A stretch of 64,000 nucleotides of DNA from Macrostomum lignano (taxonomy: Eukaryota): positions 124,001-188,000 of the forward strand of contig NIVC01001390.1 of assembly GCA_002269645.1 (NCBI GenBank), read 5' to 3'. Under the pieces are notes generated by a model. That model searched no databases. It saw only the letters and a program-made list of their open reading frames with translations, and was not told the DNA's origin. Shown one piece after another: positions 1-53,416 of this stretch (position 1 is its first letter; each line of letters starts with the position of its first letter). Made by a program: the position numbers and the translations under genes.

Positions 1-349
1 CGATTGACATAATGAATTACTCAGAAACTTAGTAGTTAAGCATGAATGCCTATGGTAAAATACCAATAATGGAACCATGCTTTGTGGGCGTTAATTAAAA
101 ATCCTCGGGCCGCCCAACGTCTGTCGAGACTATTGAAAATCTTTACTCTGATTCTATGCTAACTAAACCACAAATATGTTTTGTGGGACGAGGCGCATAG
201 GTAATTTTCTCATTTCTGACTATAGATAATTAAGTAGAAAGTTATCGAGGTCAAAGTATCTTAACATCTTAACACATTCAGTTTTACTGCATAAATATAC
301 ATGTAATTCTAGGGCGACTGGATAGCCATCAGGTCATAGCAAATCTTAC

Positions 350-438
350 CTTGGTTGTTGGACGTTCCCATAGTACAGTTCCAACCAGTTGTACTCTGGC
401 GAGGAGGTAACTTTTGGCATTGCTGATATGCGGCAGTG
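350..438 (-). CDS. 5' coding exon (A1) of array gene family A; its partner exons lie before base 1
   Basis: Acceptor tttcag, donor gtaagat, 89 nt; encodes HCRISAMPKVTSSPEYNWLELYYGNVQQP and ends in phase 2. Confidence 0.55.
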
Positions 439-1354
439 CTGAAATTAGTTTTAACTGCTCATATCAGGAGAGGAAGTGAACTCCAAAGCATTTTATAAGC
501 AACAAGTAAAAATAGAACCAACGCGAAAAAAGTCTCTTCTAAAGAAAAAAGAAACGCCTTCATTGACGAAATCCCACAGCCCCTAGGGGCTATTTTGGTG
601 GGGATAAATGAGAAAAGGGGATTTTATGTAAACTTAAGGCTCTTGAATGGAAGCGGTGACCTATAGAGTTGGCGACCATAGGATGCCACTATTTATTTCT
701 TTTCATATCTAATTAGTTTCTCCCCCTGGTTCACCATTAGCGATTGAGAGGCCGGCTAATACTGGTGTGCATGCATAGAACTATACATAGGAAACTTCAT
801 TAAGGACCGAGTTTTTCAATGCGATTTCCGATTTCTATCTTAGGAAATCGCCTACTGAAGAGTAGCAAGAGTGAACCGAATCTCTAATCGTGTGTACGAA
901 AAGTTCTACACCGATAGTCAAATTAGAACTTGTGTGTGGTCACAGGTGAGGTCCTAAACTCAGTGCATATAAGACTATAGTTGACAGCGAGTAAGAGCTG
1001 AGGATTGTGAGCAATTATCACTAAAGAGTTTGGAGAGTCACACGCGTAAGTTAAAGTTTAATAATCAGCTAACACTATCTACGAGCTATATCCGCCGAAA
1101 AGAAGAAGTCAAAGACGTTCAAAAATTCATTCTGCAGTTTATTTGCTTTGTAAAAATCAGTAAAACCTGAATGTAGTTCCAAAATACTGTACACATTGTC
1201 TCCCAGATGAAATAGCGAGGCTTTACTATTCTAACTAAATGCACAGAAGTTTCGAGCATGTCATCGTACTAAGATCTCTCACCCAGCACAGTTCTATTGT
1301 AACTAATTTTTATCTGAAAAGTGGATCGATTCTTACAACTCTTACAGTTTTTCG

Positions 1355-1610
1355 TCAAATGTTTCTACACTGACAGACACTTTCGTGGGTCTCTTTGCGG
1401 CGCGACGGTAGCAGTAGATCTGCTTCTCGACCTTGCTCTCGTTCATGCAGCTTGCATGAGCCATACATAATTCTCGACATCGGATTGGCGGAACGAGTTT
1501 CGGTGATCAGGCAAAATCCCTCGCGCAGGCCTTGCATTAGAAACTCACGGTCATCTTCGTCTTGAAGAAATCTGGACGACGCAGATTCATGCAGTTGGCA
1601 TTGTTCCTGT
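1355..1610 (-). pseudogene. Frameshifted relic of a DIRS/Ngaro-type (tyrosine-recombinase retrotransposon) RT ORF N-terminus; one copy in each of the nine units
   Basis: Pieces across frames: RFLQDEDDREFLMQGLREGFCLI / SDVENY / ESKVEKQI..KRPTKVS. These match the remembered pre-RT pattern D.DREFLL.G...GF.I ... ENY.SA ... KVEKQI ... KPT.VS. Confidence 0.5.
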
Positions 1611-1859
1611 GAAAAGCGTCAGGGATAAAAGCAAAGTTAACATTAATAGGAGTAATACCCAATGGAATTCCTGATATTTGAGCTGAGCTCTTATATAAAT
1701 CGCGATTCTGCTAAGTCTAAGTAAATAATAAAAATTAATTAAAGTTTAAATTCAGCTGATAATTTTGTCTACATGACTTATTGTGCTATTCGCTGAATAA
1801 AGTTAGATTTTCACATTTCGAGTAAGTCAGATTTCGTTGCCGTATCGCATTGACAAGGG

Positions 1860-2225
1860 TGCAAGACGCCATCTGCCTCCCGTCTGATCGCACGCCGAGG
1901 TCCATTACTGTAAGAGTTGGATCTTCAAGCGGCCTTGAAAGCAAAGACTACCTTGCGTTGAGAGCTTCATAGACGGGGCTGTCATAGCTGGAGAAGGTCT
2001 CAATCTGGTTGTCGCAAGTAGGATTGAATGCATCAATGGCATTGACTTACTTGACTCAGCTTCAGGGGGTCCGGGCATCCGGATGCAGCGAGGAGGCGTT
2101 GCCGCCACTTTCCCTAACCTGGTGCTGCGGTGTCGCGCAGGGAGATCCGGAAGTGCCGGTGTCCGCAGGGGTGGTTCCTTGGCCGGAGAGCCCAAGAGGT
2201 GATGGTCGCTCGCCCGGTGACCCAG
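1860..2225 (-). mobile_element. 'L' segment: LINE-linked sequence captured in type I units (also ~6667-7030, ~19260-19620; truncated in type III)
   Basis: Homologous to 35888-36250, which runs directly into a LINE ORF2 C-terminus. The shared junction motif is ggatggtcgctcgcccggt. Confidence 0.55.
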
Positions 2226-2227
2226 AA

Positions 2228-2760: not shown

Positions 2761-3169
2761 GTTGCTACGTGTATCTATCACACACTAACTGTATTATACT
2801 CTAACAGCTTAGGCAATATGCTATCCCTCCTGTAACCACAGACACTCACTAACCATTTTAGTATATTGGATTTCATTCCTATTGTTGGTAATATTTGTAT
2901 ATTTAGTTGGTAATAGTTGGTAACAACTCAAACAACGGATATTCATGACTGGTATATATGCTCTTTATTTTGCTACCGTAGACTAGGGGTAGACAAAGGA
3001 TAAAAAGAGATGAGGGAGAGGGAAGGAAAAATGGGGAAGGCAGGGAAGAAAATGGTAGAAGAAACTTCCACCGCTACTGGCAGTAGTATGTATAGTACAG
3101 GAAAGTGGCTCATTTCGTGCTGAAAATCCATACTCAACGAATGCGATAAAAAATATAAAAAAGAATTCA

Positions 3170-3680
3170 CTTAAAATGCACTACTGCATTGTGTCTCTAG
3201 AACGCAAGGCTTATATATCGCCAAATTAACTTCAATTACAGGTTGCAGACTTGCAGCGTCCGTGATGTCGCAAACGCACTGTGTCAGCGACGGAGTGACG
3301 TCAATCATTCGTGAGTAGGTGACATGACCGCTGAAATGGGAGATTTCGTATTTCAAATTAATTGGTATGCTTGCACTTCCCAAACATGAACGATCCTCTA
3401 ATTTATACTTTATTTTAGCTGCCTACTGAGACTAGCAAGAGAAGAGTGTGAAGCGAATCTCTTATCGTGTGTACAAAAAACAGCTCAGCGGATAATACCA
3501 GTTGACAGCGAGTAAGAACTGAGGACTTCGAGGAATTCAAAATTAAGGTTTGGACACACTAAGTGGTTCATGTTTCTAATAGAAACTGATAGGAAACTTT
3601 AATCACTTTTACCAAAGACCACTAAACTTTTGAGAAGAACTTAAAATATTTAAGTCCTTTTTTATCACTAAAGAGTTTTG
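3170..3680. promoter_or_regulatory. Element P, subfamily 3 (also ~7987, ~11921, ~15896, ~20568); partial subfamily 1 at ~720-1050 in every unit; subfamily 4 at ~24320-24830, ~28263, ~32206
   Basis: Perfect TGACGTCA at 3296-3303, plus shared gcctactga..tagcaaga and cagctcagcgga..agttgacagcgagtaa blocks. Confidence 0.35.
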
Positions 3681-3686
3681 TGAGAG

Positions 3687-3939: not shown

Positions 3940-4090
3940 GGAGAGGGAGATACGCGCTTAATTTAGAGCTATAATAATTTAAACTTTCTATTCCCGCCAA
4001 AAATAATTCAAAGAAAAATAGGACTTCCGAAACATTAACCATTCGATCGGTTATTTTTTATTTCCGTCTAAAAGAAACTTGGTTGCATGT

Positions 4091-5247
4091 TTAAATGGCG
4101 CAACCACACGGTAGCTGGGTCAATCTGAAAAGGAATATTTGAATATTTATTAAATCTTAAATACTATTGGCAATGTCTGTGCTACTCCAATAATGAATAT
4201 TAATCACTACTAGTACGTAGATCTGGTAAAACTTACGGATTAGCAAAGCTGACTCCGCCGACCACCCTGGCTACGTGGATTTTGTAACGATCGTTGCATA
4301 TGCTCCGCCGCCGCCGGCTCCTCATCCGCGCTGAGGCGTACTGCCCCGAGCCGGCGCAGGAGACGCTACTGCTCCGCTCCCGTGCTCTGAGGCGCGACCT
4401 GTGACGCCCAACATCGACCCTGGGGCGTAACTTGTTGTTGTTGTTGTTGTTGTTGTTGCATTTCTCAATTTTCAGTTGAAAATTGTTGATTCGAGCACGT
4501 AACGGCATGCCATTATCAATGCCAATTTTTTCGTTGGGCAGACCAATCATGTTTAGAAGTTGCGTGATATCATTTAATTGGCCACAGTAATGGGCTCCAG
4601 GACACTCCTGCTGTTTCAGCTCACCCTCAGTATCAGAAGCCAGGACTTGCTCGAAGCTGCAGAAATATTTTATTGGATCGGCATATCCATGTATTAAGAT
4701 GTAGGATAGTAAAATTTATTGGCAAATTTTAACCAATCTTATATAAACTTCGTAGTTTAATTGAAAAAAAACTTCATTTTTGATTGGTGCAGTGTGACAC
4801 ATCTATGCTGATCGCGATTGACATAATGAATTACTCAGAAACTTAGTAGTTAAGCATGAATGCCTATGGTAAAATACCAATAATGGAACCATGCTTTGTG
4901 GGCGTTAATTAAAAATCCTCGGGCCGCCCAACGTCTGTCGAGACTATTGAAAATCTTTACTCTGATTCTATGCTAACTAAACCACAAATATGTTTTGTGG
5001 GACGAGGCGCATAGGTAATTTTCTCATTTCTGACTATAGATAATTAAGTAGAAAGTTATCGAGGTCAAAGTATCTTAACATCTTAACACCATTCAGTTTT
5101 ACTGCATAAATATACATGTAATTCTAGGGCGACTGGATAGCCATCAGGTCATAGCAAATCTTACCTTGGACGTTGCACGTTGGAGAGTTCCAACCAGTTG
5201 TACTCTGGCGAGGAGGTATCTTTTGGCATTGCTAATATGCGGCAGTG
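4091..5247 (-). CDS. Family A hypothetical spliced gene, copy with in-frame RTE insertion (exons 5247-5165, 4656-4237, 4124-4091)
   Basis: Canonical GT-AG sites with compatible phases and an open frame through all exons. AATAAA lies ~60 nt past the last acceptor. Confidence 0.55.
4300..4461 (+). mobile_element. 5'-truncated RTE-clade LINE 3' end with (TTG)n tail and 7-bp TSD GTTGCAT (second copy at ~21695-21856)
   Basis: Absent from the other A2 copies. GTTGCAT is duplicated at 4293-4299 and 4455-4461. The + strand reads MLRRRRLLIRAEAYCPEPAQETLLL..RRDL*, resembling a deleted RTE ORF C-terminus (RRRRL..GH..R...P), followed by a short UTR and microsatellite tail. Confidence 0.7.
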
Positions 5248-8200
5248 CTGAAATTAGTTTTAACTGCTCATATCAGGAGAGGAAGTGAACTCCAAAGCAT
5301 TTTATAAGCAACAAGTAAAAATAGAACCAACGCGAAAAATTCTCTTCTAAAGAAAAAAGAAACGCCTTCATTGACGAAATCCCACAGCCCCTAGGGGCTA
5401 TTTTGGTGGGGATAAATGAGAAAAGGGGATTTTTGTAAACTTAAGGCTCTTGAATGGAAGCGGTGACCTATAGAGTTGGCGACCATAGGATGCCACTATT
5501 TATTTCTTTTCATATCTAATTAGTTTCTCCCCCTAGTTCACCATTAGCGATTGAGAGGCCGGCTAATACTGGTGTGCATGCATAGAACTATACATAGGAT
5601 ACTTCATTAAGGACCGAGTTTTTCAATGCGATTTCCGATTTCTATCTTAGGAAATCGCCTACTGAAGAGTAGCAAGAGTGAAGCGAATCTCTGATCGTGA
5701 GTACGAAAAGTTCTACACCGATAGTCAAATTAGAACTTGTGTGTGGTCACAGGTGAGGTCCTAAACTCAGTGCATATAAGACTATAGTTGACAGCGAGTA
5801 AGAGCTGAGGATTGTGAGCAATTATCACTAAAGAGTTTGGAGAGTCACACGCGTAAGTTAAAGTTTAATAATCAGCTAACACTATCTACGAGCTATATCC
5901 GCCGAAAAGAAGAAGTCAAAGACGTTCAAAAATTCATTCTGCAGTTTATTTGCTTTGTAAAAATCAGTAAAACCTGAATGTAGTTCCAAAATACTGTACA
6001 CATTGTCTCCCAGATGAAATAGCGAGGCTTTACTATTCTAACTAAATGCACAGAAGTTTCGAGCATGTCATCGTACTAAGATCTCTCACCCAGCACAGTT
6101 CTATTGTAACTAATTTTTATCTGAAAAGTGGATCGATTCTTACAACTCTTACAGTTTTTCGTCAAATGTTTCTACACTGACAGACACTTTCGTGGGTCTC
6201 TTTGCGGCGCAACGGTAGCAGTAGATCTGCTTCTCGACCTTGCTCTCGTTCATGCAGCTTGCATGAGCCATACATAATTCTCGACATCGGATTGGCGGAA
6301 CGAGTTTCGGTGATCAGGCAAAATCCCTCGCGCAGGCCTTGCATTAGAAACTCACGGTCATCTTCGTCTTGAAGAAATCTGGACGACGCAGATTCATGCA
6401 GTTGGCATTGTTCCTGTGAAAAGCGTCAGGGATAAAAGCAGAGTTAACATTAATAGGAGTAATACCCAATGGAGTTCCTGATATTTGAGCTGAGCTCTTA
6501 TATAAATCGCGATTCTGCTAAGTCTAAGTAAATAATAAAAATTAATTAAAGTTTAAATTCAGCTGATAATTTTGTCTACATGACTTATTGTGCTATTCGC
6601 TGAATAAAGTTAGATTTTCACATTTCGAGTAAGTCAGATTGCGTTGCCGTATCGCATTGACAAGGGTGCAAGACGCCATCTGCCTCCCGTCTGATCGCAC
6701 GCCGAGGTCCATTACTGTAAGAGTTGGATCTTCAAGCGGCCTTGAAAGCAAAGACTACCTTGCGTTGAGAGCTTCATAGATGGGGCTGTCATAGCTGGAG
6801 AAGGTCTCAATCTGGTTGTCGCAAGTAGGATTGAATGCATCAATGGCATTGACTTACTTGACTCAGCTTCAGGGGGTCCGGGCATCCGGATGCAGCGAGG
6901 AGGCGTTGCCGCCACTTTCCCTAACCTGGTGCTGCGGTGTCGCGCAGGGAGATCCGGAAGTGCCGGTGTCCGCAGGGGTGGTTCCTTGGCCGGAGAGCCC
7001 AAGAGGTGGATGGTCGCTCGCCCGGTGACCCAGAAGTCTGTATCCTCTCTACTTCAATGCTGCTTGCATCGCCTGTGATGTCGAGCACGCACAGTGTCGA
7101 TCGTGACAGAGTGACGTCGGCTTTTCGGGACCACAGTAGGTGACTTGTTTTCTGAAATGGGAAATTTTGCACTTCAAATTTATTGCTCTTGTCTTAATTC
7201 CCAATTAGCTTCTCATGCTGCTTCACCATTAGTGGGAGACCGGCAAATACTGGTGTGCATGCATAGGACTACTTAATAAACCTCATCCGGACCCGGATTT
7301 TTCTATGCGCTTTCCAATTTCTATTTTATAAGATTTTTGATTGTGAGGAATTTTTGAGATTTGGATACACTTAGGGGCTCACGTATCTAATAGTACAGTA
7401 ACTGCTAGTAACTTTAGTAACTTTGACCACCTGCCTTTTTAATGAAAGTTCCAGTTAAAGGTATGACCGGATGACGGCGCCACCTTGTCGTCATCTGCAA
7501 AGGATAGTAAATTATGCAAAGGTTGATTTATCATGCCGCATATCTTATCTTATCAATTGGCTCGCTATGTTGCTACGTGTATCTATCACACACTAACTGT
7601 ATTATACTCTAACAGCTTAGGCAATATGCTATCCCTCCTGTAACCACAGACACTCATAAACCATTTTAGTATATTGGATTACATTCCCATTGTTGGTAAT
7701 ATTTGTATATTTGTATAATAGTTGGTAATAGTTGGTAACAACTCAAACAACGGATATTCATGACTGGTATGTATGCTCTTTATTTTGCTACCGTAGACTA
7801 GGGGTAGACAAAGGATAAAAAGAGATGGGGGAGAGGGAAGGAAAAAATGGGGAAGGCAGGGAAGAAAATGGTAGAATAAACTTCCATGGCTACTGGCAGT
7901 AGTATGTATAGTACAGGAAAGTGGCTCATTTCGTGCTGAAAATCCATACTCAACGAATGCGATAAAAAATATTAAAAAGAATTCACTTAAAATGCACTAC
8001 TGCATTTTGTCTCTAGAACGCAAGACTTTTATATCGCCAAATTAACTTCAATTACAGGTTGCAGACTTGCAGCGTCCGTGATGTCGCAAACGCACTGTGT
8101 CAGCGACAGAGTGACGTCAATCATTCGTGAGTAGGTGACATGACCGCTGAAATGGGAGATTTCGTATTTCAAATTAATTGGTATGCTTGCACTTCCCAAA

Positions 8201-9891: not shown

Positions 9892-11309
9892 CTGAAATTA
9901 GTTTTAACTGCTCATATCAGGAGAGGAAGTGAACTCCAAAGCATTTTATAAGCAACAAGTAAAAATAGAACCAACGCGAAAAAATTCTCTTCTAAAGAAA
10001 AAAGAAACGCCTTCATTGACGAAATCCCACAGCCCCCGAGGGGCTATTTTGATGGGGATAAATGAGAAAAGGGGATTTTATGTAAACTTAAGGCTCTTAA
10101 ATGGAAGCGGTGACCTATAGAGTTGGCGACCATAGGATGCCACTATTTATTTCTTTTCATATCTAATTATTTTCTCCCCCTGGTTCACCATTAGCGATTG
10201 AGAGGCCGGCTAATACTGGTGTGCATGCATAGAACTATACATAGGAAACTTCATTAAGGACCGAGTTTTTCAATGCGATTTCCGATTTCTATCTTAGGAA
10301 AACGCCTACTGAAGAGTAGCAAGAGTAAAGCGAATCTCTAATCGTGTGTACGAAAAGTTCTACACCGATAGTCAAATTAGAACTTGTATGTGGTCACAGG
10401 TGAGGTCCTAAACCCAGTGCATATAAGACTAGTTGACAGCGAGTAAGAGCTGAGGATTGTGAGCAATTATCACTAAAGAGTTTGGAGAGTCACACGCGTA
10501 AGTTAAAGTTTAATAATTAGCTAACACTATCTACGAGCTATATCCGCCGAAAAGAAGAAGTCAAAGACGTTCCAAAATTCATTCTACAGTTTATTTGCTT
10601 TGTAAAAATAAGCAAACCTGAATGTAGTTCCAAATACTGTACACATTGTCTCCCAGATGAAATAGCGAGGCTTTACTATTCTAACTAAATGCACAGAAGT
10701 TTCGAGCATGTCATCGTACTAAGATCTCTCACCCAGCACAGTTCTATTGTAACTAATTTTTATCTGAAAAGTGGATCGATTTTACAACTCTTACAGTTTT
10801 TCGTCAAACTTTTCTACACTGACAGACACTTTCGTGGGTCTCTTTGCGGCGCGACGGTAGCAGTAGATCTGCTTCTCGACCTTGCTCTCGTTCATGCAGC
10901 TTGCATGAGCCATACATAATTCTCAACCTCCGATTGGCGGAACGAGTTTCGGTGATCAGGCAAAATCCCTCGCGCAGGCCTTGCATTAGAAACTCACGGT
11001 CATCTTCGTCTTGAAGAAATCTGGACGACGCAGATTCATGCAGTTGGCATTGTTCCTGTGAAAAGCGTCAGGGATAAAAGCAGAGTTAACATTAATAGGA
11101 GTAATACCCAATGGAGTTCCTGATATTTGAGCTGAGCTCTTATATAAATCGCGATTCTGCTAAGTCTAAGTAAATAATAAAAATTAATTAAAGTTTAAAT
11201 TCAGCTGATAATTTTGTCTGCATGACTTATTGTGCTATTCGATGAATAAAGTTAGATTTTCACATTTCGAGTAAGTCAGATTGCGTTGCCGTATCGCATT
11301 GACAAGGGT

Positions 11310-11544
11310 TGAGTTGAGCGGGAGGCTGACAGTTCCAACCCTCTCTCTCACGCTTAGTCTGACCAGGGACTTCTAGAGATACGGACTGGAAGCTATAATA
11401 GAACACCCCCCATTTTTATCCCTGTGTGGCAAGGCGGCAGTTGTGCTAAACAAGCTAAATGAACTAGCTCTTTCGATTTGAAGTTGAGCAATGGGGTAGG
11501 GGGATTGGGGATCTGTAGAGACAGCCAGTGTGCCGTGTTTTTTT
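11310..11544. other. ~235-bp foreign segment replacing L and P2 in type II units (also 15286-15519)
   Basis: Sharp junctions gacaagggt|tgagttgagc and ttttt|gcttaggcaatatg; not seen elsewhere in the window. Confidence 0.75.
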
Positions 11545-12840
11545 GCTTAGGCAATATGCTATCCCCCCTGTAACCACAGACACTCATAAACCATTTTAGT
11601 ATATTGGATTTCACTCCTATTGTTGGTAATATTTGTATATTTGTATAATAGTTGGTAATAGTTGGTAACAACTCAAACAACGGATATTCATGACTGGTAT
11701 ATATGCTCTTTATTTTGCTACCGTAGACTAGGGGTAGACAAAGGATAAAAAGAGATGGGGAGAGGGAAGGAAAATGGGGAAGGCAGGGAAGAAAATGGTA
11801 GAAGAAACTTCCACCGCTATTGGCAGTAGTATGTATAGTACAGGAAAGTGGCTCATTTCGTGCTGAAAATCCATACAGACCATACTCAACGAATGCGATA
11901 AAAAATATAAAAAAAATTCACTTAAAATGCACTACTGCATTGTGTCTCTAGAACGCAAGGCTTATATATCGCCAAATTAACTTCAATTGCAGGTTGCAGA
12001 CTTGCAGCGTCTGTGATGTCGCAAACGCACTGTGTCAGCGACGGAGTGACGTCAATCATTCGTGAGTAGGTGACATGACCGCTGAAATGGGAGATTTCGT
12101 ATTTCAAATTAATTGGTATGCTTGCACTTCCCAAACATGAACGATCCTCTAATTTATACTTTATTTTAGCTGCCTACTGAGACTAGCAAGAGAAGAGTGT
12201 GAAGCGAATCTCTTATCGTGTGTACAAAAAACAGCTCAGCGGATAATACCAGTTGACAGCGAGTAAGAACTGAGGACTTCGAGGAATTCAAAATTAAGGT
12301 TTGGACACACTAAGTGGTTCATGTTTCTAATAGAAACTGATAGGAAACTTTAATCACTTTTACCAAAGACCACTAAACTTTTGAGAAGAACTTAAAATAT
12401 TTAAGTCCTTTTTTATCACTAAAGAGTTTTGTGAGAGAGGAGCGTCGCTCCTGCAAAAGCTATGGGGATGCCAATGATTTGTTCCTCCGCCCCACTTTGT
12501 GACGCGATATGGTAATCAATAATTTTGCTTCAGAACGCCAAAATGCGTGCCTGAATGTGGCGCAAAAATGAGTGCCTGCGGCGCTATAATGAGTGTTAAC
12601 AACACCGATTCCTTAAAACAATGTTGAAATTTAGTCATGTGAAATGCTTGGCTTTGTGGCCCCCTACCATAATAGATGGGGACGCCCCTGGAGAGGGAGA
12701 TACGCGCTTAATTTAGAGCTATAATAATTTAAACTTTCTATTCCCGCCAAAAATAATTCAAAGAAAAATAGGACTTCCAAAACATTAACCATTCGATCGG
12801 TTATTTTTTATTTCCGTCTAAAAGAAACTTGGTTGCATGT

Positions 12841-22649: not shown

Positions 22650-25225
22650 CTGAAATTAGTTTTAACTGCTCATATCAGGAGAGGAAGTGAACTCCAGAGC
22701 ATTTTATAAGCAACAAGTAAAAATAGAACCAACGCGAAAAATTCTCTTCTAAAGAAAAAAGAAACGCCTTCATTGACGAAATCCCACAGCCCCTAGGGGC
22801 TATTTTGGTGGGGATAAATGAGAAAAGGGGATTTTATGTAACCTTAAGGCTCTTAAATGGTTGCGGTGACCTATAGAGTTGGCGACCATAGGATGCCACT
22901 ATTTATTTCTTTTCATATCTAATTAGTTTCTCCCCCTGGTTCACCATTAGCGATTGAGAGGCCGGCTAATACTGGTGTGCATGCATAGAACTATACATAG
23001 GAAACTTCATCAAGGACCGAGTTTTTCAATGCGAATTCCGATTTCTATCTTAGGAAAACGCCTACTGAAGAGTAGCAAGAGTGAAGCGAATCTCTAATCG
23101 TGTGTACGAAAAGTTCTACACCGATAGTCAAATTAGAACTTGTGTGTGGTCACAGGTGAGGTCCTAAACCCAGTGCATATAAGACTAGTTGACAGCGAGT
23201 AAGAACTGGGGATTGTGAGCAATTATCACTAAAGAGTTTGGAGAGTCACACGCGTAAGTTAAAGTTTAATAATTAGCTAACACTATCTACGAGCTATATA
23301 TTCGCCGAAAAGAAGAAGTCAAAGACGTTCCAAAAATTCATTCTGCAGTTTATTTGCTTTGTAAAAATCAGTAAAACCTGAATGTAGTTCCAAATACTGT
23401 ACACATTGTCTCCCAGATGAAATAGCGAGGCTTTACTATTCTAACTAAATGCACAGAAGTTTCGAGCATGTCATCGTACTAAGATCTCTCACCCAGCACA
23501 GTTCTATTGTAACTAATTTTTATCTGAAAAGTGGATCGATTCTTACAACTCTTACAGTTTTTCGTCAAATGTTTCTACACTGACAGACACTTTCGTGGGT
23601 CTCTGCGACGCGACGGTAGCAGTAGATCTGCTTCTCGACCTTGCTCTCGTTCATGCAGCTTGCATGAGCCATACATAATTCTCGACATCGATTGGCGGAA
23701 CGAGTTTCGGTGATCAGGCAAAATCCCTCGCGCAGGCCTTGCATTAGAAACTCACGGTCATCTTCGTCTTGAAGAAATCTGGACGACGCAGATTCATGCA
23801 GTTGGCATTGTTCCTGTGAAAAGCGTCAGGGATAAAAGCAAAGTTAACATTAATAGGAGTACTACCCAATGGAGTTCCTGATATTTGAGCTGAGCTCTTA
23901 TATAAGTCGCGATTCTGCTAAGTCTAAGTAAATAATAAAAATTAATTAAAGTTTAAATTCAGCTGATAATTTTGTCTACATGACTTATTGTGCTTTTCGC
24001 TGAATAAAGTTAGATTTTCTCATTTCACATGCAAGTCAGATTGCGTTGCCGTATCGCATTGACAAGGGTGCAAGACGCCATCTGCCTCCCGTCTGATCGC
24101 ACGCCGAGGTCCATTACTGTAAGAGTTGGATCTTCAAGCGGCCTTGAAAGCAAAGACTACCTTGCGTTGAGAGCTTCATAGATGGGGCTGTCATAGCTGG
24201 AGAAGGTCTCAATCTGGTTGTCGCAAGTAGGATTGAATGCATCAATGGCATTGACTTATTATACTTGACTCAGCTTCAGGGGGTCCAGGCATCCGGATGC
24301 AGCGAGAAATGATTAAAAAGAATTAATGCACTGAATAAAATACACTGTTGCATTGTGTGTTTAAAGCGGAAGCTTTATGTCTCCAAAATAGTCATCAAGT
24401 TGGTTACAGCGCGTGTGTTGTCGAAAACGCACTGTTTCGGTGACGGAGTGACGTCGCTCATTCGTGAATCGTGACTGCATGGGTGACGAACGCTGAAAAT
24501 GGGAGATTACGCACTTAAAAACAATATTAATAGCAAACTCGTACTTCCCAAAAACTAATTTCCCTAGTTTCTAATTTATTTTAGCTTGCCTACAAATAGT
24601 AGTGAGAGAAGAGTGTGAAGTTTATTTCTTTTCGTGTGAGCCAAAAATCTGCACCAGTAGTCAGTGGTCGCAGGTGATGTTCTCAGCTCAGGGGATATGA
24701 CCAGCTGATACTAACTTAAGTAGCTTTGACTAAAGACCACAAAACTTTTTAATCAAGCATAAAGTATGTATGTCCTATATTGATAGTCCTATTTTCATAG
24801 TTACCACTTCAGAGATTGGAAAGAGATTAAAGTTATAAATCAAACAATTTTCTATACCCGCCAAAATGAAGAGTCAACGAAAAATAATTCTTCCAAAAAA
24901 TTATTTGTGTTTATTTCTGTAGAATACAGCAAGAGCACGAATGCAATACAATTCCATGGAATGTGCAAAAAGATGGATAAGTAAATTCCATGGAACATTC
25001 CGGTACAGTTCCCGGAGATAAGATCGAAACTATTAGGTGTCGTTATAAGCTCTCAGATCTCAACCGAGTTGGTAATTTGAATTCAAAAACTGCACGATGG
25101 CGATCTGCAATGGAATAAGATTATTTTTTAATATTTAGTAAATCTTAAATACTGTTGGTAATATTTGTGCAACTCAAGTAACGAATATTTATGACTAGTA
25201 TGTAGATCCGGGAAAACTTACTGGC

Positions 25226-25517
25226 TCAAAAAGTTTTGCCACCGACCGTACGGGCGAGATATACTTGAAACAAATTCTCCTCGATTATTTTTATTTTCAA
25301 AACGAAATCGTTATTTTTTCCATTAACTTCAATTGTCCATCCGATGCTTCCAAGTTGTTGAATAATATGATTTTTTTGTATACATTTCATTATTATTTCT
25401 ACCTCATTTTTAATGAGCGTACCACATCTCTGATCGCCGATTGTTTCTTTATTTTCTTTTAAATTTGGAACAATAGACAGAATATTTTCGTAATTATAAT
25501 TGGCAATCTCGACGAAC
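25226..25517 (-). CDS. Diverged family A paralog, main exon (A2')
   Basis: Acceptor ttttgcag in the same phase as A2. Open frame FVEIANYNYENILSIVPNLKENKETIGDQRCGTLIKNEVEIIMKCIQKNHIIQQLGSIGWTIEVNGKNNDFVLKIKIIEENLFQVYLARTVGGKTF*. It shares CG, NxFxLKI and ARxVGG..F with A2, and the downstream intron position is conserved. Confidence 0.6.
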
Positions 25518-28500
25518 CTGCAAAATGATGTTATTGAATCAATATTTACATAAAATTGAGATATAAAATAACAAAACTACTGAAGCAAGCAAGTTTACGC
25601 AATCTTTATATAATTTTCATAGCTAAATTGAAAAGAACGGCCTATTGAAATTTTCGGGAGCGAAATATTTATTATTTCAATTTTTAAATAACTGCTTTTC
25701 GGCGTAATTAAACTACGAGCTAAAAATACTCGGGCCGCAAAACACCTGCGGAGACTCTCTGTTGCAAATCTTTACCTGATGCTATGCTCACTAAACCACA
25801 AATACGCATTGGGGGCACGAGGCGCATAGTTCATTTTTTCATCTCCGATATTTAAAAGCAGAAAGTTGAATCCAGGTCAAATATATTCCATTTCAACACT
25901 GTCAACTTTTACTGCATACATATCAATGAAATTGTAGAGCGATGTGAAAGCTATCAGGTCTTAGCAAATCTTACTTTTTTGAGACTTTCTCGGTTGATTC
26001 AACGTGCTCAGCATTACTGAGACTGCTTGCTCTGTGTCATTCTGTCACTTTTTTCATTCGACCTGTCTGTGCTAAACGGCAAGCTGTTCCGAGACACTCC
26101 AGAATAAAAAAATACGGTGAAACAGAAAATGTTGCAGAGATTCCAAGCTTTCATTTGCACTAATTTTCATTTGAAACGGATGGAAATTATGGATACTAGA
26201 GGCAACAGAAGCAACCGTACAAGAACTTTTGTTAGACAGTATAGTAGTTAAGCACGAATGTCTACCTAGGGTACAATGCCAACGTCTGTCGAGACTATTG
26301 AAAATCTTTACTCTGATTCTATGCTAACTAAACCACAAATATGTTTTGTGGGGCGAGGTGCATAGGTAATTTTTCTCATATCTGACTATAGATAATTAAG
26401 TAGAAAGTTGTCGACGTCAAAGTATCTTAACATCTTAACACCATTCAGTTTTACTGCATACATATACATGTAATTCTAGGGCGACTGGATAGCCATCAGG
26501 TCATAGCAAATCTTACCTTTGTTGTTCGTACAGGTCCGACCGGTTGTACTCTGGCGAGGAGGTATCATTTGGCATTGCTGATATGCGGCAGTGCTGAAAT
26601 TAGTTTTAACTGCTCATATCAGGAGAGGAAGTGAACTCCAGAGCATTTTATAAGCAACAAGTAAAAATAGAACCAACGCGAAAAATTCTCTTCTAAAGAA
26701 AAAAGAAACGCCTTCATTGACGAAATCCCACAGCCCCTAGGGGCTATTTTGGTGGGGATAAATGAGAAAAGGGGATTTTATGTAACCTTAAGGCTCTTAA
26801 ATGGTTGCGGTGACCTATAGAGTTGGCGACCATAGGATGCCACTATTTATTTCTTTTCATATCTAATTAGTTTCTCCCCCTGGTTCACCATTAGCGATTG
26901 AGAGGCCGGCTAATACTGGTGTGCATGCATAGAACTATACATAGGAAACTTCATCAAGGACCGAGTTTTTCAATGCGACTTCCGATTTCTATCTTAGGAA
27001 ATCGCCTACTGAAGAGTAGCAAGAGTGAAGCGAATCTCTAATCGTGTGTACGAAAAGTTCTACACCGATAGTCAAATTAGAACTTGTGTGTGGTCACAGG
27101 TGAGGTCCTAAACCCAGTGCATATAAGACTAGTTAACAGCGAGTAAGAACTGGGGATTGTGAGCAATTATCACTAAAGAGTTTGGAGAGTCACACGCGTA
27201 AGTTAAAGTTTAATAATTAGCTAACACTATCTACGAGCTATATATTCGCCGAAAAGAAGAAGTCAAAGACGTTCCAAAAATTCATTCTGCAGTTTATTTG
27301 CTTTGTAAAAATCAGTAAAACCTGAATGTAGTTCCAAATACTGTACACATTGTCTCCCAGATGAAATAGCGAGGCTTTACTATTCTAACTAAATGCACAG
27401 AAGTTTCGAGCATGTCATCGTACTAAGATCTCTCACCCAGCACAGTTCTATTGTAACTAATTTTTATCTGAAAAGTGGATCGATTCTTACAACTCTTACA
27501 GTTTTTCGTCAAATGTTTCTACACTGACAGACACTTTCGTGGGTCTCTGCGACGCGACGGTAGCAGTAGATCTGCTTCTCGACCTTGCTCTCGTTCATGC
27601 AGCTTGCATGAGCCATACATAATTCTCGACATCGAATTGGCGGAACGAGTTTCGGTGATCAGGCAAAATCCCTCGCGCAGGCCTTGCATTAGAAACTCAC
27701 GGTCATCTTCGTCTTGAAGAAATCTGGACGACGCAGATTCATGCAGTTGGCATTGTTCCTGTGAAAAGCGTCAGGGATAAAAGCAAAGTTAACATTAATA
27801 GGAGTACTACCCAATGGAGTTCCTGATATTTGAGCTGAGCTCTTATATAAGTCGCGATTCTGCTAAGTCTAAGTAAATAATAAAAATTAATTAAAGTTTA
27901 AATTCAGCTGATAATTTTGTCTACATGACTTATTGTGCTTTTCGCTGAATAAAGTTAGATTTTCACATTTCGAGTAAGTCAGATTGCGTTGCCGTATCGC
28001 ATTGACAAGGGTGCAAGACGCCATCTGCCTCCCGTCTGATCGCACGCCGAGGTCCATTACTGTAAGAGTTGGATCTTCAAGCGGCCTTGAAAGCAAAGAC
28101 TACCTTGCGTTGAGAGCTTCATAGATGGGGCTGTCATAGCTGGAGAAGGTCTCAATCTGGTTGTCGCAAGTAGGATTGAATGCATCAATGGCATTGACTT
28201 ATTATACTTGACTCAGCTTCAGGGGGTCCAGGCATCCGGATGCAGCGAGAAATGATTAAAAAGAATTAATGCACTGAATAAAATACACTGTTGCATTGTG
28301 TGTTTAAAGCGGAAGCTTTATGTCTCCAAAATAGTCATCAAGTTGGTTACAGCGCGTGTGTTGTCGAAAACGCACTGTTTCGGTGACGGAGTGACGTCGC
28401 TCATTCGTGAATCGTGACTGCATGGGTGACGAACGCTGAAAATGGGAGATTACGCACTTAAAAACAATATTAATAGCAAACTCGTACTTCCCAAAAACTA

Positions 28501-29168: not shown

Positions 29169-29460
29169 TCAAAAAGTTTTGCCACCGACCGTACGGGCGA
29201 GATATACTTGAAACAAATTCTCCTCGATTATTTTTATTTTCAAAACGAAATCGTTATTTTTTCCATTAACTTCAATTGTCCATCCGATGCTTCCAAGTTG
29301 TTGAATAATATGATTTTTTTGTATACATTTCATTATTATTTCTACCTCATTTTTAATGAGCGTACCACATCTCTGATCGCCGATTGTTTCTTTATTTTCT
29401 TTTAAATTTGGAACAATAGACAGAATATTTTCGTAATTATAATTGGCAATCTCGACGAAC
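29169..29460 (-). CDS. Diverged family A paralog exon A2', copy 2
   Basis: Copy of 25226-25517 shifted by 3943 bp. Confidence 0.6.
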
Positions 29461-32400
29461 CTGCAAAATGATGTTATTGAATCAATATTTACATAAAATT
29501 GAGATATAAAATAACAAAACTACTGAAGCAAGCAAGTTTACGCAATCTTTATATAATTTTCATAGCTAAATTGAAAAGAACGGCCTATTGAAATTTTCGG
29601 GAGCGAAATATTTATTATTTCAATTTTTAAATAACTGCTTTTCGGCGTAATTAAACTACGAGCTAAAAATACTCGGGCCGCAAAACACCTGCGGAGACTC
29701 TCTGTTGCAAATCTTTACCTGATGCTATGCTCACTAAACCACAAATACGCATTGGGGGCACGAGGCGCATAGTTCATTTTTTCATCTCCGATATTTAAAA
29801 GCAGAAAGTTGAATCCAGGTCAAATATATTCCATTTCAACACTGTCAACTTTTACTGCATACATATCAATGAAATTGTAGAGCGATGTGAAAGCTATCAG
29901 GTCTTAGCAAATCTTACTTTTTTGAGACTTTCTCGGTTGATTCAACGTGCTCAGCATTACTGAGACTGCTTGCTCTGTGTCATTCTGTCACTTTTTTCAT
30001 TCGACCTGTCTGTGCTAAACGGCAAGCTGTTCCGAGACACTCCAGAATAAAAAAATACGGTGAAACAGAAAATGTTGCAGAGATTCCAAGCTTTCATTTG
30101 CACTAATTTTCATTTGAAACGGATGGAAATTATGGATACTAGAGGCAACAGAAGCAACCGTACAAGAACTTTTGTTAGACAGTATAGTAGTTAAGCACGA
30201 ATGTCTACCTAGGGTACAATGCCAACGTCTGTCGAGACTATTGAAAATCTTTACTCTGATTCTATGCTAACTAAACCACAAATATGTTTTGTGGGGCGAG
30301 GTGCATAGGTAATTTTTCTCATATCTGACTATAGATAATTAAGTAGAAAGTTGTCGACGTCAAAGTATCTTAACATCTTAACACCATTCAGTTTTACTGC
30401 ATACATATACATGTAATTCTAGGGCGACTGGATAGCCATCAGGTCATAGCAAATCTTACCTTTGTTGTTCGTACAGGTCCGACCGGTTGTACTCTGGCGA
30501 GGAGGTATCATTTGGCATTGCTGATATGCGGCAGTGCTGAAATTAGTTTTAACTGCTCATATCAGGAGAGGAAGTGAACTCCAGAGCATTTTATAAGCAA
30601 CAAGTAAAAATAGAACCAACGCGAAAAATTCTCTTCTAAAGAAAAAAGAAACGCCTTCATTGACGAAATCCCACAGCCCCTAGGGGCTATTTTGGTGGGG
30701 ATAAATGAGAAAAGGGGATTTTATGTAACCTTAAGGCTCTTAAATGGTTGCGGTGACCTATAGAGTTGGCGACCATAGGATGCCACTATTTATTTCTTTT
30801 CATATCTAATTAGTTTCTCCCCCTGGTTCACCATTAGCGATTGAGAGGCCGGCTAATACTGGTGTGCATGCATAGAACTATACATAGGAAACTTCATCAA
30901 GGACCGAGTTTTTCAATGCGACTTCCGATTTCTATCTTAGGAAATCGCCTACTGAAGAGTAGCAAGAGTGAAGCGAATCTCTAATCGTGTGTACGAAAAG
31001 TTCTACACCGATAGTCAAATTAGAACTTGTGTGTGGTCACAGGTGAGGTCCTAAACCCAGTGCATATAAGACTAGTTAACAGCGAGTAAGAACTGGGGAT
31101 TGTGAGCAATTATCACTAAAGAGTTTGGAGAGTCACACGCGTAAGTTAAAGTTTAATAATTAGCTAACACTATCTACGAGCTATATATTCGCCGAAAAGA
31201 AGAAGTCAAAGACGTTCCAAAAATTCATTCTGCAGTTTATTTGCTTTGTAAAAATCAGTAAAACCTGAATGTAGTTCCAAATACTGTACACATTGTCTCC
31301 CAGATGAAATAGCGAGGCTTTACTATTCTAACTAAATGCACAGAAGTTTCGAGCATGTCATCGTACTAAGATCTCTCACCCAGCACAGTTCTATTGTAAC
31401 TAATTTTTATCTGAAAAGTGGATCGATTCTTACAACTCTTACAGTTTTTCGTCAAATGTTTCTACACTGACAGACACTTTCGTGGGTCTCTGCGACGCGA
31501 CGGTAGCAGTAGATCTGCTTCTCGACCTTGCTCTCGTTCATGCAGCTTGCATGAGCCATACATAATTCTCGACATCGAATTGGCGGAACGAGTTTCGGTG
31601 ATCAGGCAAAATCCCTCGCGCAGGCCTTGCATTAGAAACTCACGGTCATCTTCGTCTTGAAGAAATCTGGACGACGCAGATTCATGCAGTTGGCATTGTT
31701 CCTGTGAAAAGCGTCAGGGATAAAAGCAAAGTTAACATTAATAGGAGTACTACCCAATGGAGTTCCTGATATTTGAGCTGAGCTCTTATATAAGTCGCGA
31801 TTCTGCTAAGTCTAAGTAAATAATAAAAATTAATTAAAGTTTAAATTCAGCTGATAATTTTGTCTACATGACTTATTGTGCTTTTCGCTGAATAAAGTTA
31901 GATTTTCACATTTCGAGTAAGTCAGATTGCGTTGCCGTATCGCATTGACAAGGGTGCAAGACGCCATCTGCCTCCCGTCTGATCGCACGCCGAGGTCCAT
32001 TACTGTAAGAGTTGGATCTTCAAGCGGCCTTGAAAGCAAAGACTACCTTGCGTTGAGAGCTTCATAGATGGGGCTGTCATAGCTGGAGAAGGTCTCAATC
32101 TGGTTGTCGCAAGTAGGATTGAATGCATCAATGGCATTGACTTATTATACTTGACTCAGCTTCAGGGGGTCCAGGCATCCGGATGCAGCGAGAAATGATT
32201 AAAAAGAATTAATGCACTGAATAAAATACACTGTTGCATTGTGTGTTTAAAGCGGAAGCTTTATGTCTCCAAAATAGTCATCAAGTTGGTTACAGCGCGT
32301 GTGTTGTCGAAAACGCACTGTTTCGGTGACGGAGTGACGTCGCTCATTCGTGAATCGTGACTGCATGGGTGACGAACGCTGAAAATGGGAGATTACGCAC

Positions 32401-33111
32401 TTAAAAACAATATTAATAGCAAACTCGTACTTCCCAAAAACTAATTTCCCTAGTTTCTAATTTATTTTAGCTTGCCTACAAATAGTAGTGAGAGAAGAGT
32501 GTGAAGTTTATTTCTTTTCGTGTGAGCCAAAAATCTGCACCAGTAGTCAGTGGTCGCAGGTGATGTTCTCAGCTCAGGGGATATGACCAGCTGATACTAA
32601 CTTAAGTAGCTTTGACTAAAGACCACAAAACTTTTTAATCAAGCATAAAGTATGTATGTCCTATATTGATAGTCCTATTTTCATAGTTACCACTTCAGAG
32701 ATTGGAAAGAGATTAAAGTTATAAATCAAACAATTTTCTATACCCGCCAAAATGAAGAGTCAACGAAAAATAATTCTTCCAAAAAATTATTTGTGTTTAT
32801 TTCTGTAGAATACAGCAAGAGCACGAATGCAATACAATTCCATGGAATGTGCAAAAAGATGGATAAGTAAATTCCATGGAACATTCCGGTACAGTTCCCG
32901 GAGATAAGATCGAAACTATTAGGTGTCGTTATAAGCTCTCAGATCTCAACCGAGTTGGTAATTTGAATTCAAAAACTGCACGATGGCGATCTGCAATGGA
33001 ATAAGATTATTTTTTAATATTTAGTAAATCTTAAATACTGTTGGTAATATTTGTGCAACTCAAGTAACGAATATTTATGACTAGTATGTAGATCCGGGAA
33101 AACTTACTGGC

Positions 33112-33403
33112 TCAAAAAGTTTTGCCACCGACCGTACGGGCGAGATATACTTGAAACAAATTCTCCTCGATTATTTTTATTTTCAAAACGAAATCGTTAT
33201 TTTTTCCATTAACTTCAATTGTCCATCCGATGCTTCCAAGTTGTTGAATAATATGATTTTTTTGTATACATTTCATTATTATTTCTACCTCATTTTTAAT
33301 GAGCGTACCACATCTCTGATCGCCGATTGTTTCTTTATTTTCTTTTAAATTTGGAACAATAGACAGAATATTTTCGTAATTATAATTGGCAATCTCGACG
33401 AAC
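33112..33403 (-). CDS. Diverged family A paralog exon A2', copy 3
   Basis: Copy of 25226-25517 shifted by 7886 bp. Confidence 0.6.
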
Positions 33404-36229
33404 CTGCAAAATGATGTTATTGAATCAATATTTACATAAAATTGAGATATAAAATAACAAAACTACTGAAGCAAGCAAGTTTACGCAATCTTTATATAAT
33501 TTTCATAGCTAAATTGAAAAGAACGGCCTATTGAAATTTTCGGGAGCGAAATATTTATTATTTCAATTTTTAAATAACTGCTTTTCGGCGTAATTAAACT
33601 ACGAGCTAAAAATACTCGGGCCGCAAAACACCTGCGGAGACTCTCTGTTGCAAATCTTTACCTGATGCTATGCTCACTAAACCACAAATACGCATTGGGG
33701 GCACGAGGCGCATAGTTCATTTTTTCATCTCCGATATTTAAAAGCAGAAAGTTGAATCCAGGTCAAATATATTCCATTTCAACACTGTCAACTTTTACTG
33801 CATACATATCAATGAAATTGTAGAGCGATGTGAAAGCTATCAGGTCTTAGCAAATCTTACTTTTTTGAGACTTTCTCGGTTGATTCAACGTGCTCAGCAT
33901 TACTGAGACTGCTTGCTCTGTGTCATTCTGTCACTTTTTTCATTCGACCTGTCTGTGCTAAACGGCAAGCTGTTCCGAGACACTCCAGAATAAAAAAATA
34001 CGGTGAAACAGAAAATGTTGCAGAGATTCCAAGCTTTCATTTGCACTAATTTTCATTTGAAACGGATGGAAATTATGGATACTAGAGGCAACAGAAGCAA
34101 CCGTACAAGAACTTTTGTTAGACAGTATAGTAGTTAAGCACGAATGTCTACCTAGGGTACAATGCCAACGTCTGTCGAGACTATTGAAAATCTTTACTCT
34201 GATTCTATGCTAACTAAACCACAAATATGTTTTGTGGGGCGAGGTGCATAGGTAATTTTTCTCATATCTGACTATAGATAATTAAGTAGAAAGTTGTCGA
34301 CGTCAAAGTATCTTAACATCTTAACACCATTCAGTTTTACTGCATACATATACATGTAATTCTAGGGCGACTGGATAGCCATCAGGTCATAGCAAATCTT
34401 ACCTTTGTTGTTCGTACAGGTCCGACCGGTTGTACTCTGGCGAGGAGGTATCATTTGGCATTGCTGATATGCGGCAGTGCTGAAATTAGTTTTAACTGCT
34501 CATATCAGGAGAGGAAGTGAACTCCAAAGCATTTTATAAGCAACAAGTAAAAATAGAACCAACGCGAAAAATTCTCTTCTAAAGAAAAAAGAAACGCCTT
34601 CATTGACGAAATCCCACAGCCCCTAGGGGCTATTTTGGTGGGGATAAATGAGAAAAGGGGATTTTATGTAACCTTAAGGCTCTTAAATGGTTGCGGTGAC
34701 CTATAGAGTTGGCGACCATAGGATGCCACTATTTATTTCTTTTCATATCTAATTAGTTTCTCCCCCTGGTTCACCATTAGCGATTGAGAGGCCGGCTAAT
34801 ACTGGTGTGCATGCATAGAACTATACATAGGAAACTTCATCAAGGACCGAGTTTTTCAATGCGACTTCCGATTTCTATCTTAGGAAATCGCCTACTGAAG
34901 AGTAGCAAGAGTGAAGCGAATCTCTAATCGTGTGTACGAAAAGTTCTACACCGATAGTCAAATTAGAACTTGTGTGTGGTCACAGGTGAGGTCCTAAACC
35001 CAGTGCATATAAGACTAGTTGACAGCGAGTAAGAACTGGGGATTGTGAGCAATTATCACTAAAGAGTTTGGAGAGTCACACGCGTAAGTTAAAGTTTAAT
35101 AATTAGCTAACACTATCTACGAGCTATATATTCGCCGAAAAGAAGAAGTCAAAGACGTTCCAAAAATTCATTCTGCAGTTTATTTGCTTTGTAAAAATCA
35201 GTAAAACCTGAATGTAGTTCCAAATACTGTACACATTGTCTCCCAGATGAAATAGCGAGGCTTTACTATTCTAACTAAATGCACAGAAGTTTCGAGCATG
35301 TCATCGTACTAAGATCTCTCACCCAGCACAGTTCTATTGTAACTAATTTTTATCTGAAAAGTGGATCGATTCTTACAACTCTTACAGTTTTTCGTCAAAT
35401 GTTTCTACACTGACAGACACTTTCGTGGGTCTCTGCGACGCGACGGTAGCAGTAGATCTGCTTCTCGACCTTGCTCTCGTTCATGCAGCTTGCATGAGCC
35501 ATACATAATTCTCGACATCGAATTGGCGGAACGAGTTTCGGTGATCAGGCAAAATCCCTCGCGCAGGAATTGCATTAGAAACTCACGGTCATCTTCGTCT
35601 TGAAGAAATCTGGACGACGCAGATTCATGCAGTTGGCATTGTTCCTGTGAAAAGCGTCAGGGATAAAAGCAAAGTTAACATTAATAGGAGTACTACCCAA
35701 TGGAGTTCCTGATATTTGAGCTGAGCTCTTATATAAGTCGCGATTCTGCTAAGTCTAAGTAAATAATAAAAAAAATAATATTAAATTCAGCTGATAATTT
35801 TGTCTGCATGACTTATTGTGCTATTAGAATCAATACTCTACTTGATCTAATCCATCAGTGCCTCAGCAGAAACGACTATGCTTGAGCAAGACGCCATCTG
35901 CCTCCAGTCTGATCGCACGCTGAGGTCCATTACTGTAAAAGTTGGATCTTCAAGCGGCCTTGAAAGCAAAGGCTGCCTTGCGTTTAGAGCTTCATAGATG
36001 GAGAAGATCTGATTCTGGTCGTTGCAAGTAGTACTGAATGCAGCAATGGCCTTGCTTACTTGACTCAGCTGCAGGGGGCTCCGTGCGTCCGGAAACATCG
36101 AGGAGGCGTTGCCGCCCATTTCGCTAACCCCTGGCGACCACGGGCAGCTGGTGCTGCGGTGTCGCGCAGGGAGATCCGGTGGTGCCGTCGTCCTCAGGCG
36201 TGGTTCTTTGTCCGGAGAGTCCAGGATGT

Positions 36230-53406: not shown

Positions 53407-53416
53407 TGCAGTTTAA

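Follow-up and report, generated by a model that had tools for sequence, protein, structure and literature searches.

A probable gene-bearing macrosatellite built of higher-order repeats in the flatworm Macrostomum lignano

In this study we analysed a window of 64,000 nucleotides from Macrostomum lignano (assembly GCA_002269645.1, contig NIVC01001390.1, positions 124,001 to 188,000 of the forward strand), the first 36 kb of which are taken up by one tandem array. We read the locus as a macrosatellite that carries genes and is organised in higher-order repeats, and so as an amplified gene cluster of an ordinary type. It is probably one end of a minus-strand array of a small protein gene found only in M. 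lignano, in which decayed earlier copies of that gene unit make up the spacers between the live genes. An original prediction, made from the letters alone, had described the array as a series of old cassettes, each a promoter-like element P plus a gene end, re-amplified later as young higher-order units, and had put it forward as the best candidate in the window for an undescribed system. What we find instead is a lineage-specific multigene array with pseudogene relics, whose products are already among the predicted M. lignano proteins in UniProt. No published description of the present array was found in the literature.

Self-alignment of the window resolves nine head-to-tail units, U1 to U9, as direct repeats with successive periods of 4814, 4638, 3953, 3976, 4829, 3955, 3943 and 3943 bp. 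The identity between units over positions 1 to 36,248 is 92-100%, so the near-identity of the units that had been predicted holds, with their range of length corrected from 4-4.8 kb to 3.9-4.8 kb. The left end of the array is cut by the window edge, and the right edge falls within a GC-rich segment. Read in the sense of the genes, a type I unit consists of modules X, A and C2 (~4.8 kb), a type II unit of a truncated X, A and a private 235-bp segment that stands in for C2 and the GC-rich piece (~3.95 kb), and a type III unit of X and A' (~3.95 kb). The X copies are 0-5% apart, the copy at the edge being the most diverged. The three A' modules (U7-U9) are identical over 1972 bp, U7 is identical to U8, and U4 and U5 are the same except for about one indel and a 0.28% difference in X. 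As in a macrosatellite, the units are of kilobase scale (3943-4829 bp), lie head to tail on the minus strand, are highly alike and carry an intact gene each (eight complete and one cut by the window edge), with spacers of 2.7-3.5 kb between the genes. The window as a whole has 36-46% GC, many minisatellites and no open reading frames (ORFs) of bacterial style; tandem repeats make up ~15% of the M. lignano genome (PMC5730564).

In each gene, module X supplies exon 1, and module A or A' supplies exons 2 and 3. All eight complete genes (g2 to g9) have open frames and canonical GT-AG introns, while the ninth, g1, is the one cut by the window edge. The predicted products measure 122 aa for the genes that we call A-short (g3, g4 and g5), 172-174 aa for A-long (g2 and g6) and 116 aa for A' (g7, g8 and g9). 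The exon-1 peptide MPKVTSSPEYNWLELYYGNVQQP is encoded inside X and is followed by a GTAAGA donor, and the three lengths of exon 1 (71, 65 and 59 nt) all keep phase 2. The products of g4 and g5 are the same as the predicted M. lignano protein P0001 (UniProt A0A1I8JGH6), with 100% identity across the three exons by tblastn, and that of g2 differs by one residue from the UniProt-derived protein P0002. The exon-2 frame of A' was open in none of 20,000 shuffles. It was also seen that the A' stop codons (25226-25228, 29169-29171 and 33112-33114) lie three codons ahead of the exon-2 donor, and that the A' products are without the C-terminus LPCGCA(I/M) of most other members; A' transcripts would hold an intron in the 3' untranslated region. 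The cassette of P plus a gene end thus gives way to a complete and intact gene in each unit, with its exon 1 and proximal TATA box in the very module that had been named for a relic of a DIRS element.

The signals at the gene end are confined to the minus strand. The acceptor string CTTTTCAGAT occurs five times in family A and nine times in module X, and CATTGCAGAT occurs three times in A'; in their longer forms these are CTTTTCAG followed by AT at the five A and nine X sites and CATTGCAG followed by AT at the three A' sites. AATAAA comes after every such string, and 42-59 nt past it A, A' and X share the motif TTTT(C)GGCGG(G/A)(A/T)ATAG, which reads as ccgcc on the plus strand and has itself no match there. 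The common layout of acceptor, AATAAA and ccgcc that had been predicted for the three modules is therefore present in all of them; the P copy that should complete it is missing from X, to which the nearest P lies upstream. The acceptors in A and A' appear to be the true exon-3 acceptors, that of A being confirmed by the C-terminus LTQLPCGCAI of P0001. At the other end of the gene, all nine copies have a TATAAAA box 76 nt upstream of the ATG (Table 1) and an acceptor-like TTTCAG that ends 18 nt upstream of it. Transcription would most likely start at this TATA box. Because about 30% of M. lignano genes undergo spliced-leader (SL) trans-splicing (PMC8629364), the TTTCAG is a plausible spliced-leader site, and SL addition may possibly occur there.

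The proteins themselves appear to be restricted to M. lignano. A peptide from the family A frame had three matches among 5.8 billion proteins, all of them predicted M. lignano proteins, and a profile of five variants found three further proteins among 1.84 billion representative proteins, again all from M. lignano. The LPCGCA(I/M) C-terminus is conserved in most members. The family proteins had no match in Pfam, and inspection showed no N-terminal hydrophobic signal or signal peptide. The AlphaFold model is poor (mean predicted local distance difference test score, pLDDT, 55), and a fold search gave no hit at E <= 0.001, only a weak Roadblock/LC7-like resemblance (template-modelling score ~0.3-0.5) from which we draw no conclusion. 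In UniProt, P0001 to P0006 bear the names glutaredoxin, TGF-beta, peptidase A1, CCG, guanylate cyclase and envelope-like, with domain support for none of the six; since these names contradict each other, we treat them as spurious. P0002 has no exact match to any unit of the window, which indicates that further copies lie elsewhere. An exact-protein look-up for the genomic context of the family returned nothing on record.

The evidence that the spacers are made of older copies comes from alignments between and within the modules. As colinear paralogues, A and A' can be aligned only block by block, with 68-86% identity, just as had been predicted for the old cassettes. Intron 1 is 82% identical between them, intron 2 is 86% and the 3' flank 71-76% identical, and the sequence that runs from the repeat R (with P as its final part) until shortly beyond the TATA box is ~69% identical. 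The spacers hold relics of the same gene unit that are 18-32% diverged and keep the orientation and order of the live gene. One of these is a gene-end relic in X, whose stretch from AATAAA to GGCGG (1145-1086) aligns locally with the A' gene end at z = 5.8 (0 of 200 shuffles); against the A gene end the relic reaches only z = 1.4, and no homology of its 'acceptor' to the real exon-3 acceptors could be shown. A second, absent from the original prediction, is an intron-2 relic between P1 and the C2 copy of R, which represents a fourth, heavily deleted old gene copy and matches A' intron 2 at z = 12.6 (0 of 200 shuffles by local alignment; also found with nhmmer). Copies of R are the third. The A' module, in turn, keeps a dead exon-1' of the old A' gene, which is followed by an intron-1 homologue at 25974-25742. 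A 4.8-kb unit holds three old monomers, namely the live gene, the intron-2 relic with R, and the gene-end relic with R, the front of the third being replaced by the GC-rich segment and a putative DIRS-like frame. The presence of three old monomers within one unit supports the two-tier history that had been proposed, in which young higher-order units of three architectures arose by re-amplification of an old tandem family. With the intron-2 relic counted, a 4.8-kb unit has four cassettes that bear a gene end or R. As in other higher-order repeats, the unit comprises at least two diverged monomers of common descent (pieces 68-82% identical to their live counterparts), and whole units differ by 0-5% as against 18-32% between the old pieces.

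We propose that this array arose in three steps. An old tandem family of gene plus R would first have diverged, most of its copies dying by deletion or insertion. Blocks of two to three old monomers would then have been re-amplified by unequal crossing-over into the three higher-order unit types, the junctions forming at short microhomologies, two of them within the GC-rich segment. Finally, gene conversion and crossing-over would keep the units 95-100% alike and produce mosaics, such as a ~230-bp patch in the A genes and the chimeric A' gene described below. The GC-rich segment contains two of the three unit junctions, and at the type III junction (24306/24307) the sequence after P3 is joined to this segment at the microhomology CTCGCTGCATCC. 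The distinct junctions of each architecture, together with the longer GC-rich copy at the array edge, fit an origin of new unit types by non-allelic recombination, with unequal crossing-over afterwards.

The GC-rich segment is possibly the 3' end of a retrotransposon. Its LINE-like label is unverified, the sole basis being a degenerate C..H..C.C motif, and the segment has neither the ORF2 homology nor the 3' tail with target-site duplication that mark a non-LTR (long terminal repeat) retrotransposon. Its copy at the array edge holds a 198-codon frame (35850-36443, minus strand), the product of which has no match in Pfam and no homologue at E <= 0.001. The 87-codon frame in X, the 'DIRS relic' of the original prediction, had likewise no Pfam match and no homologue, and the name is unverified; it does have a motif, D..FL..GL..GF, of the kind seen in DIRS-like ORFs. 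Two long open frames on the minus strand, at 15239-15892 (218 codons) and 11396-11917 (174 codons), extend across what follows P1, the type II segment of 235 bp and the beginning of X, and are broken in type I units. The 218-aa product has no Pfam match, and both frames are probably an effect of the CT-rich composition.

The genes of the array are themselves mosaic. In the A-long genes, exon 2 carries an insertion of 155 bp that is bounded by a direct repeat of 7 bp (ATGCAAC, minus strand) and has a (GTT)n end on the plus strand. It is read through in frame, adding 54 aa rich in Asn and Arg, and is also present in P0002. The insertion resembles a truncated retroposed fragment. The fixed differences between A-long and A-short are more frequent in exons (26/356) than in non-coding sequence (11/1192; Fisher p = 8e-10), and they cluster in a patch of ~230 bp (13324-13095 in g4 coordinates) that crosses the border of intron 1 and exon 2. 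The ratio of nonsynonymous to synonymous divergence (dN/dS) between the two forms is 0.8-1.07, and dS is raised too. Exon-specific positive selection between A-long and A-short was considered and rejected on account of this border and the raised dS. The patch is better read as a putative conversion tract from a P0003-like paralogue, given that it extends beyond the exon, that dS is elevated as well and that its sequence resembles P0003. The A' gene, for its part, appears to be a chimera: X exon 1 is in frame with A' exon 2, while the gene's own exon-1' relic is out of frame, and the borrowed exon seems to restore the 116-aa ORF.

Exon 2 is more diverged than its introns, and this is the one unusual feature of the array. 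The homology between A and A' reaches both borders of exon 2 and then collapses, with ~50% nucleotide and 26% amino-acid identity within the exon as against 82-86% in the flanking introns. The corresponding distances are dN 0.62 and dS 1.3, in a protein alignment that is only 26% identical, as against 0.15-0.37 for non-coding sequence. Such an excess of coding over intron divergence is the pattern of accelerated evolution, with homogenisation of the introns as the alternative. Positive selection, exchange of the exon with a distant paralogue, or a homogenisation of non-coding sequence that spares the exon could each be its cause. If it is selection, the family becomes a candidate for a fast-evolving function in a model flatworm. 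A more far-reaching reading, which we regard as unlikely, is that the locus generates diversity, its central exon being driven apart by selection or swapped among paralogues while conversion keeps introns and flanks alike. If so, whole-unit amplification would supply new copies, and the architecture would be that of venom, immune or reproductive-conflict genes, here with an unstudied, intracellular-looking protein in a hermaphrodite with strong sexual conflict.

The original prediction rested in large part on P, and its nature has to be considered together with that of R. R is a repeat of ~620 bp composed of blocks b and c and the P core, P being the last ~120 bp. Within the array it follows the gene ends of A and of A' and is also found in C2 and X, always in the same orientation and with a different block missing in each copy. 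The P core (~115 nt) has three diverged types in the array, P1 (n=5), P2 (n=3) and P3 (n=3), which are 68-74% identical to each other, and a solo copy of R outside the array holds a twelfth P. A promoter function of P, as had been predicted, is not supported because of its distance from the genes, its absence before live genes, its intron-like conservation and a TATA box at P1 only. P lies 600-790 nt downstream of the last acceptor of the preceding gene and 2.7-3.5 kb upstream of the next ATG, not directly upstream of a gene that it would drive, as a core promoter would. The copy of R that does sit directly upstream of the TATA box and exon 1 of the live gene is that in X, and from this copy the P core is absent before every live gene. 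Identity among P cores is 68-82%, not above the 82-86% of the introns, and a good TATA box follows P1 only (TATATAAG at ~3215-3222), being degenerate in A' and absent in C2 and solo R. The live promoter region (430-700) has no similarity to the P core (z ~1), and the sequence after P1 has no homology to exon 1 or intron 1. Neither the P core and the sequence downstream of it nor intron 2 showed any conserved RNA structure (consensus energies -5.3 and -0.4 kcal/mol, z ~0). The most likely reading is that P, a remnant of old intergenic sequence, is carried along as a passenger and does not act as the working promoter.

It has to be weighed against this that P might still be a working element: a distal or alternative promoter whose transcript, as a short non-coding first exon or as an outron to be trans-spliced, is joined onto the TTTCAG, or else an enhancer that neighbouring genes share. 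The perfect TGACGTCA of P1 resembles a cAMP response element, and all four P types retain its ACGTCA core; the TATATAAG box comes ~30 nt past the P1 core, and at the place expected for a start site A and A' have a conserved block (ACACAATGCA..AGTG.ATTTTA) in common. An acceptor-like site also stands ahead of every ATG, in a species with ~30% of its genes SL trans-spliced (PMC8629364). However, the loss or decay of the TATA box in the other P types, the lack of P in the R copy next to the live genes and a conservation no higher than that of introns all speak against such a role, in type III units the junction into the GC-rich segment comes at once after P, and the TATAAAA at -76 is closer to the gene. 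We consider a working P doubtful and keep to the view of P as a passenger.

It is rather improbable that R, P included, is an element that moved or was retroposed (for instance a solo LTR or a repeat like a short interspersed element) and landed repeatedly near these genes, so that the old tier would be partly illusory. The complete copy at 41622-42245 stands alone, with no family exon, intron or gene relic recognisable in its flanks, the R copies are mosaics with different blocks deleted in each, and repeats account for more than half of the M. lignano genome (PMC5730564). On the other hand, all R copies share their orientation and their position after a gene end, the stretch from AATAAA to GGCGG between gene end and R is homologous in A, A' and X, the C2 copy has the intron-2 relic ahead of it, and the solo copy has no terminal inverted repeats, target-site duplication or LTR-like ends. 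The solo R may be one more old unit in decay, or it may show that R is able to move.

Several points weigh against reading the locus as live genes interspersed with dead older copies. The transposon labels, LINE-like and DIRS, are unverified, and a solo R free of gene relics fits a mobile element as well as a decayed old unit. P1 does have its perfect TGACGTCA site and TATATAAG box, which would allow for some residual or distal promoter activity, and the transcription starts, the use of acceptors and poly(A) signals and the expression of A' are deduced from the sequence and from database gene models. Furthermore, U4 and U5 as well as U7 and U8 are identical or nearly so over ~4 kb, so that assembly duplication of some units is possible, and the published M. 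lignano assembly has been described as redundant (PMC5730564). This last point leads to the explanation that the array is in part an assembly artefact, with over-expanded units, or with haplotypes or duplicated chromosomes of a hidden polyploid (PMC5730564) stitched in tandem. The near-identity of these pairs and the identical A' modules of U7-U9 would be expected from it. The three distinct junction types, the graded divergence and an edge unit that is the most diverged would not, and an independent annotation holds several protein variants, among them P0002 with its lack of an exact match in the window, which imply further copies. We therefore hold an artefact of this kind to be quite unlikely. 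That the array consists of non-coding RNA genes (SL RNA or small nuclear RNA) driven by P can be dismissed as extremely improbable, since, typical as kilobase-scale tandem arrays with a conserved upstream element and a TATA box are of such genes in an organism that uses SL trans-splicing, the window has no Rfam family at gathering score (only noise at E up to 10), no tRNA and no copy of the published 35-nt M. lignano SL even at 3 mismatches, and the P core, the sequence downstream of P and intron 2 have no stable or covarying structure.

Table 1. Positions in the window of the array, its genes and the repeats and relics discussed in the text.
Feature	Position	Strand	Details
Tandem array, nine head-to-tail units	1-36248	-	Self-megablast and blastn
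g1, exon 1 only (MPKVTSSPEYNWLELYYGNVQQP)	350-420	-	tblastn 100% to P0001 residues 1-23; remainder left of window
g2, A-long, 172 aa	4092-5229	-	Exons 5229-5165, 4656-4237, 4124-4092; ORF intact
g3, A-short, 122 aa	8908-9873	-	Exons 9873-9803, 9313-9050, 8940-8908
g4, A-short, 122 aa	12842-13827	-	Exons 13827-13757, 13247-12984, 12874-12842
g5, A-short, 122 aa	16818-17802	-	Exons 17802-17732, 17223-16960, 16850-16818
g6, A-long, 174 aa	21490-22631	-	162-bp in-frame addition in exon 2
g7, A', 116 aa	25226-26575	-	X exon 1 (26575-26517, 59 nt) and A' exon 2 (25517-25222); stop codon 25228-25226
g8 and g9, A'	29169-30518; 33112-34461	-	Identical copies of g7
TATAAAA upstream of ATG	490-496; 5299-5305; 9943-9949; 13897-13903; 17872-17878; 22701-22707; 26645-26651; 30588-30594; 34531-34537	-	
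Insertion in A-long exon 2, 155 bp	4300-4454; 21695-21849	+	65% GC
P1 core, downstream of A genes	3250-3364; 8066-8180; 12001-12115; 15976-16090; 20648-20762	-	
P2 core, module C2	2255-2377; 7063-7185; 19653-19775	-	4.8-kb units only; 74% identical to P1
P3 core, downstream of A'	24404-24525; 28347-28468; 32290-32411	-	73% identical to P1
R in X	681-1040	-	Blocks b and c, no P core; 9/9 X copies
R in C2	2228-2757	-	Lacks block b (deleted), retains block c and P core; 79% identity with solo R
Solo R	41622-42245	-	Blocks b and c and P core (41625-41767); most complete copy, 5.4 kb outside array
Gene-end relic in X	1086-1321	-	Acceptor-like CTTTTCAG then AT (1321-1312), AATAAA (1143), TTTTCGGCGGATATAG (1101)
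Intron-2 relic	2880-2958	-	Between P1 and C2 copy of R
Exon-1' relic of old A' gene	25975-26014	-	40 nt; dead, out of frame with exon 2'
87-codon open frame in X ('DIRS relic')	1358-1618	-	Identity unverified
GC-rich ORF-bearing segment	1861-2245	-	57% GC; longer copy at array edge, 35886 to ~36650
Junction segment, 235 bp	11310-11544; 15286-15519	-	3.95-kb A-short units only

Outside the array, the window contains an IAP-like gene (50639-53412, minus strand) whose three long open frames encode two BIR domains and, at the C-terminus, a RING finger. Minisatellites lie in and around it, with 22-bp repeats at 51233-51968 and 53415-54044 and 31-bp repeats at 49996-50586. Just past the array edge there is a pyrimidine-rich 10/20-bp minisatellite (CTGTGTCTCC, 37833-39757) of ~186 copies with strong strand skew, which is followed by a 16/32-bp array at 40444-40760. 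A 24-bp minisatellite (GATTATTGCACTTGATAAACCAAG, 44657-47134) has ~103 copies with 84% matches, several of its frames being open for hundreds of codons.

The locus offers a clean worked example of how a young, species-restricted family grows, in which old copies die and blocks of live and dead copies are re-amplified together, and in which the junctions, the conversion patch, the exonised insertion and the rescued chimeric gene are all visible within 36 kb. For M. lignano genomics, it flags a region that is likely to be mis-assembled or collapsed, as well as six UniProt entries with automatic names that disagree with one another and have no domain support.

Gene-bearing macrosatellites and megasatellites are known from human RS447 with USP17, D4Z4 with DUX4, TSPY, and the GAGE and CT47 arrays. 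The present array resembles them in its kilobase-scale head-to-tail units with one intact ORF or gene each, an identity above 95% and a more diverged edge. It differs in that the unit is itself a higher-order repeat of two to three decayed copies of the gene unit, that three architectures occur within 36 kb and that the gene is a species-restricted orphan with introns. As in birth-and-death families, live genes alternate with dead relics, and there are conversion patches and a chimeric gene made of X exon 1 and A' exon 2; unlike in those families, dead and live copies are re-amplified together in units of fixed length. Accelerated exons with conserved introns are known from the PLA2 genes of snake venoms and from conotoxin genes. 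A and A' share with these a diverged exon 2, conserved flanking introns and a homology that stops at the exon borders; in contrast to venom proteins, the protein here has no signal peptide or toxin-like cysteine framework, and a secreted role is not indicated. A further parallel in organisation is with the higher-order repeats of alpha-satellite DNA (PMC4131833), in which diverged monomers (here 68-86% identical) are likewise contained in near-identical units (here 95-100%), and unequal crossing-over explains both. A centromeric role is not indicated in the present case, and in place of non-coding monomers of 171 bp the array is built from gene units of ~1.5-2 kb, one of which in each higher-order unit is a live gene.

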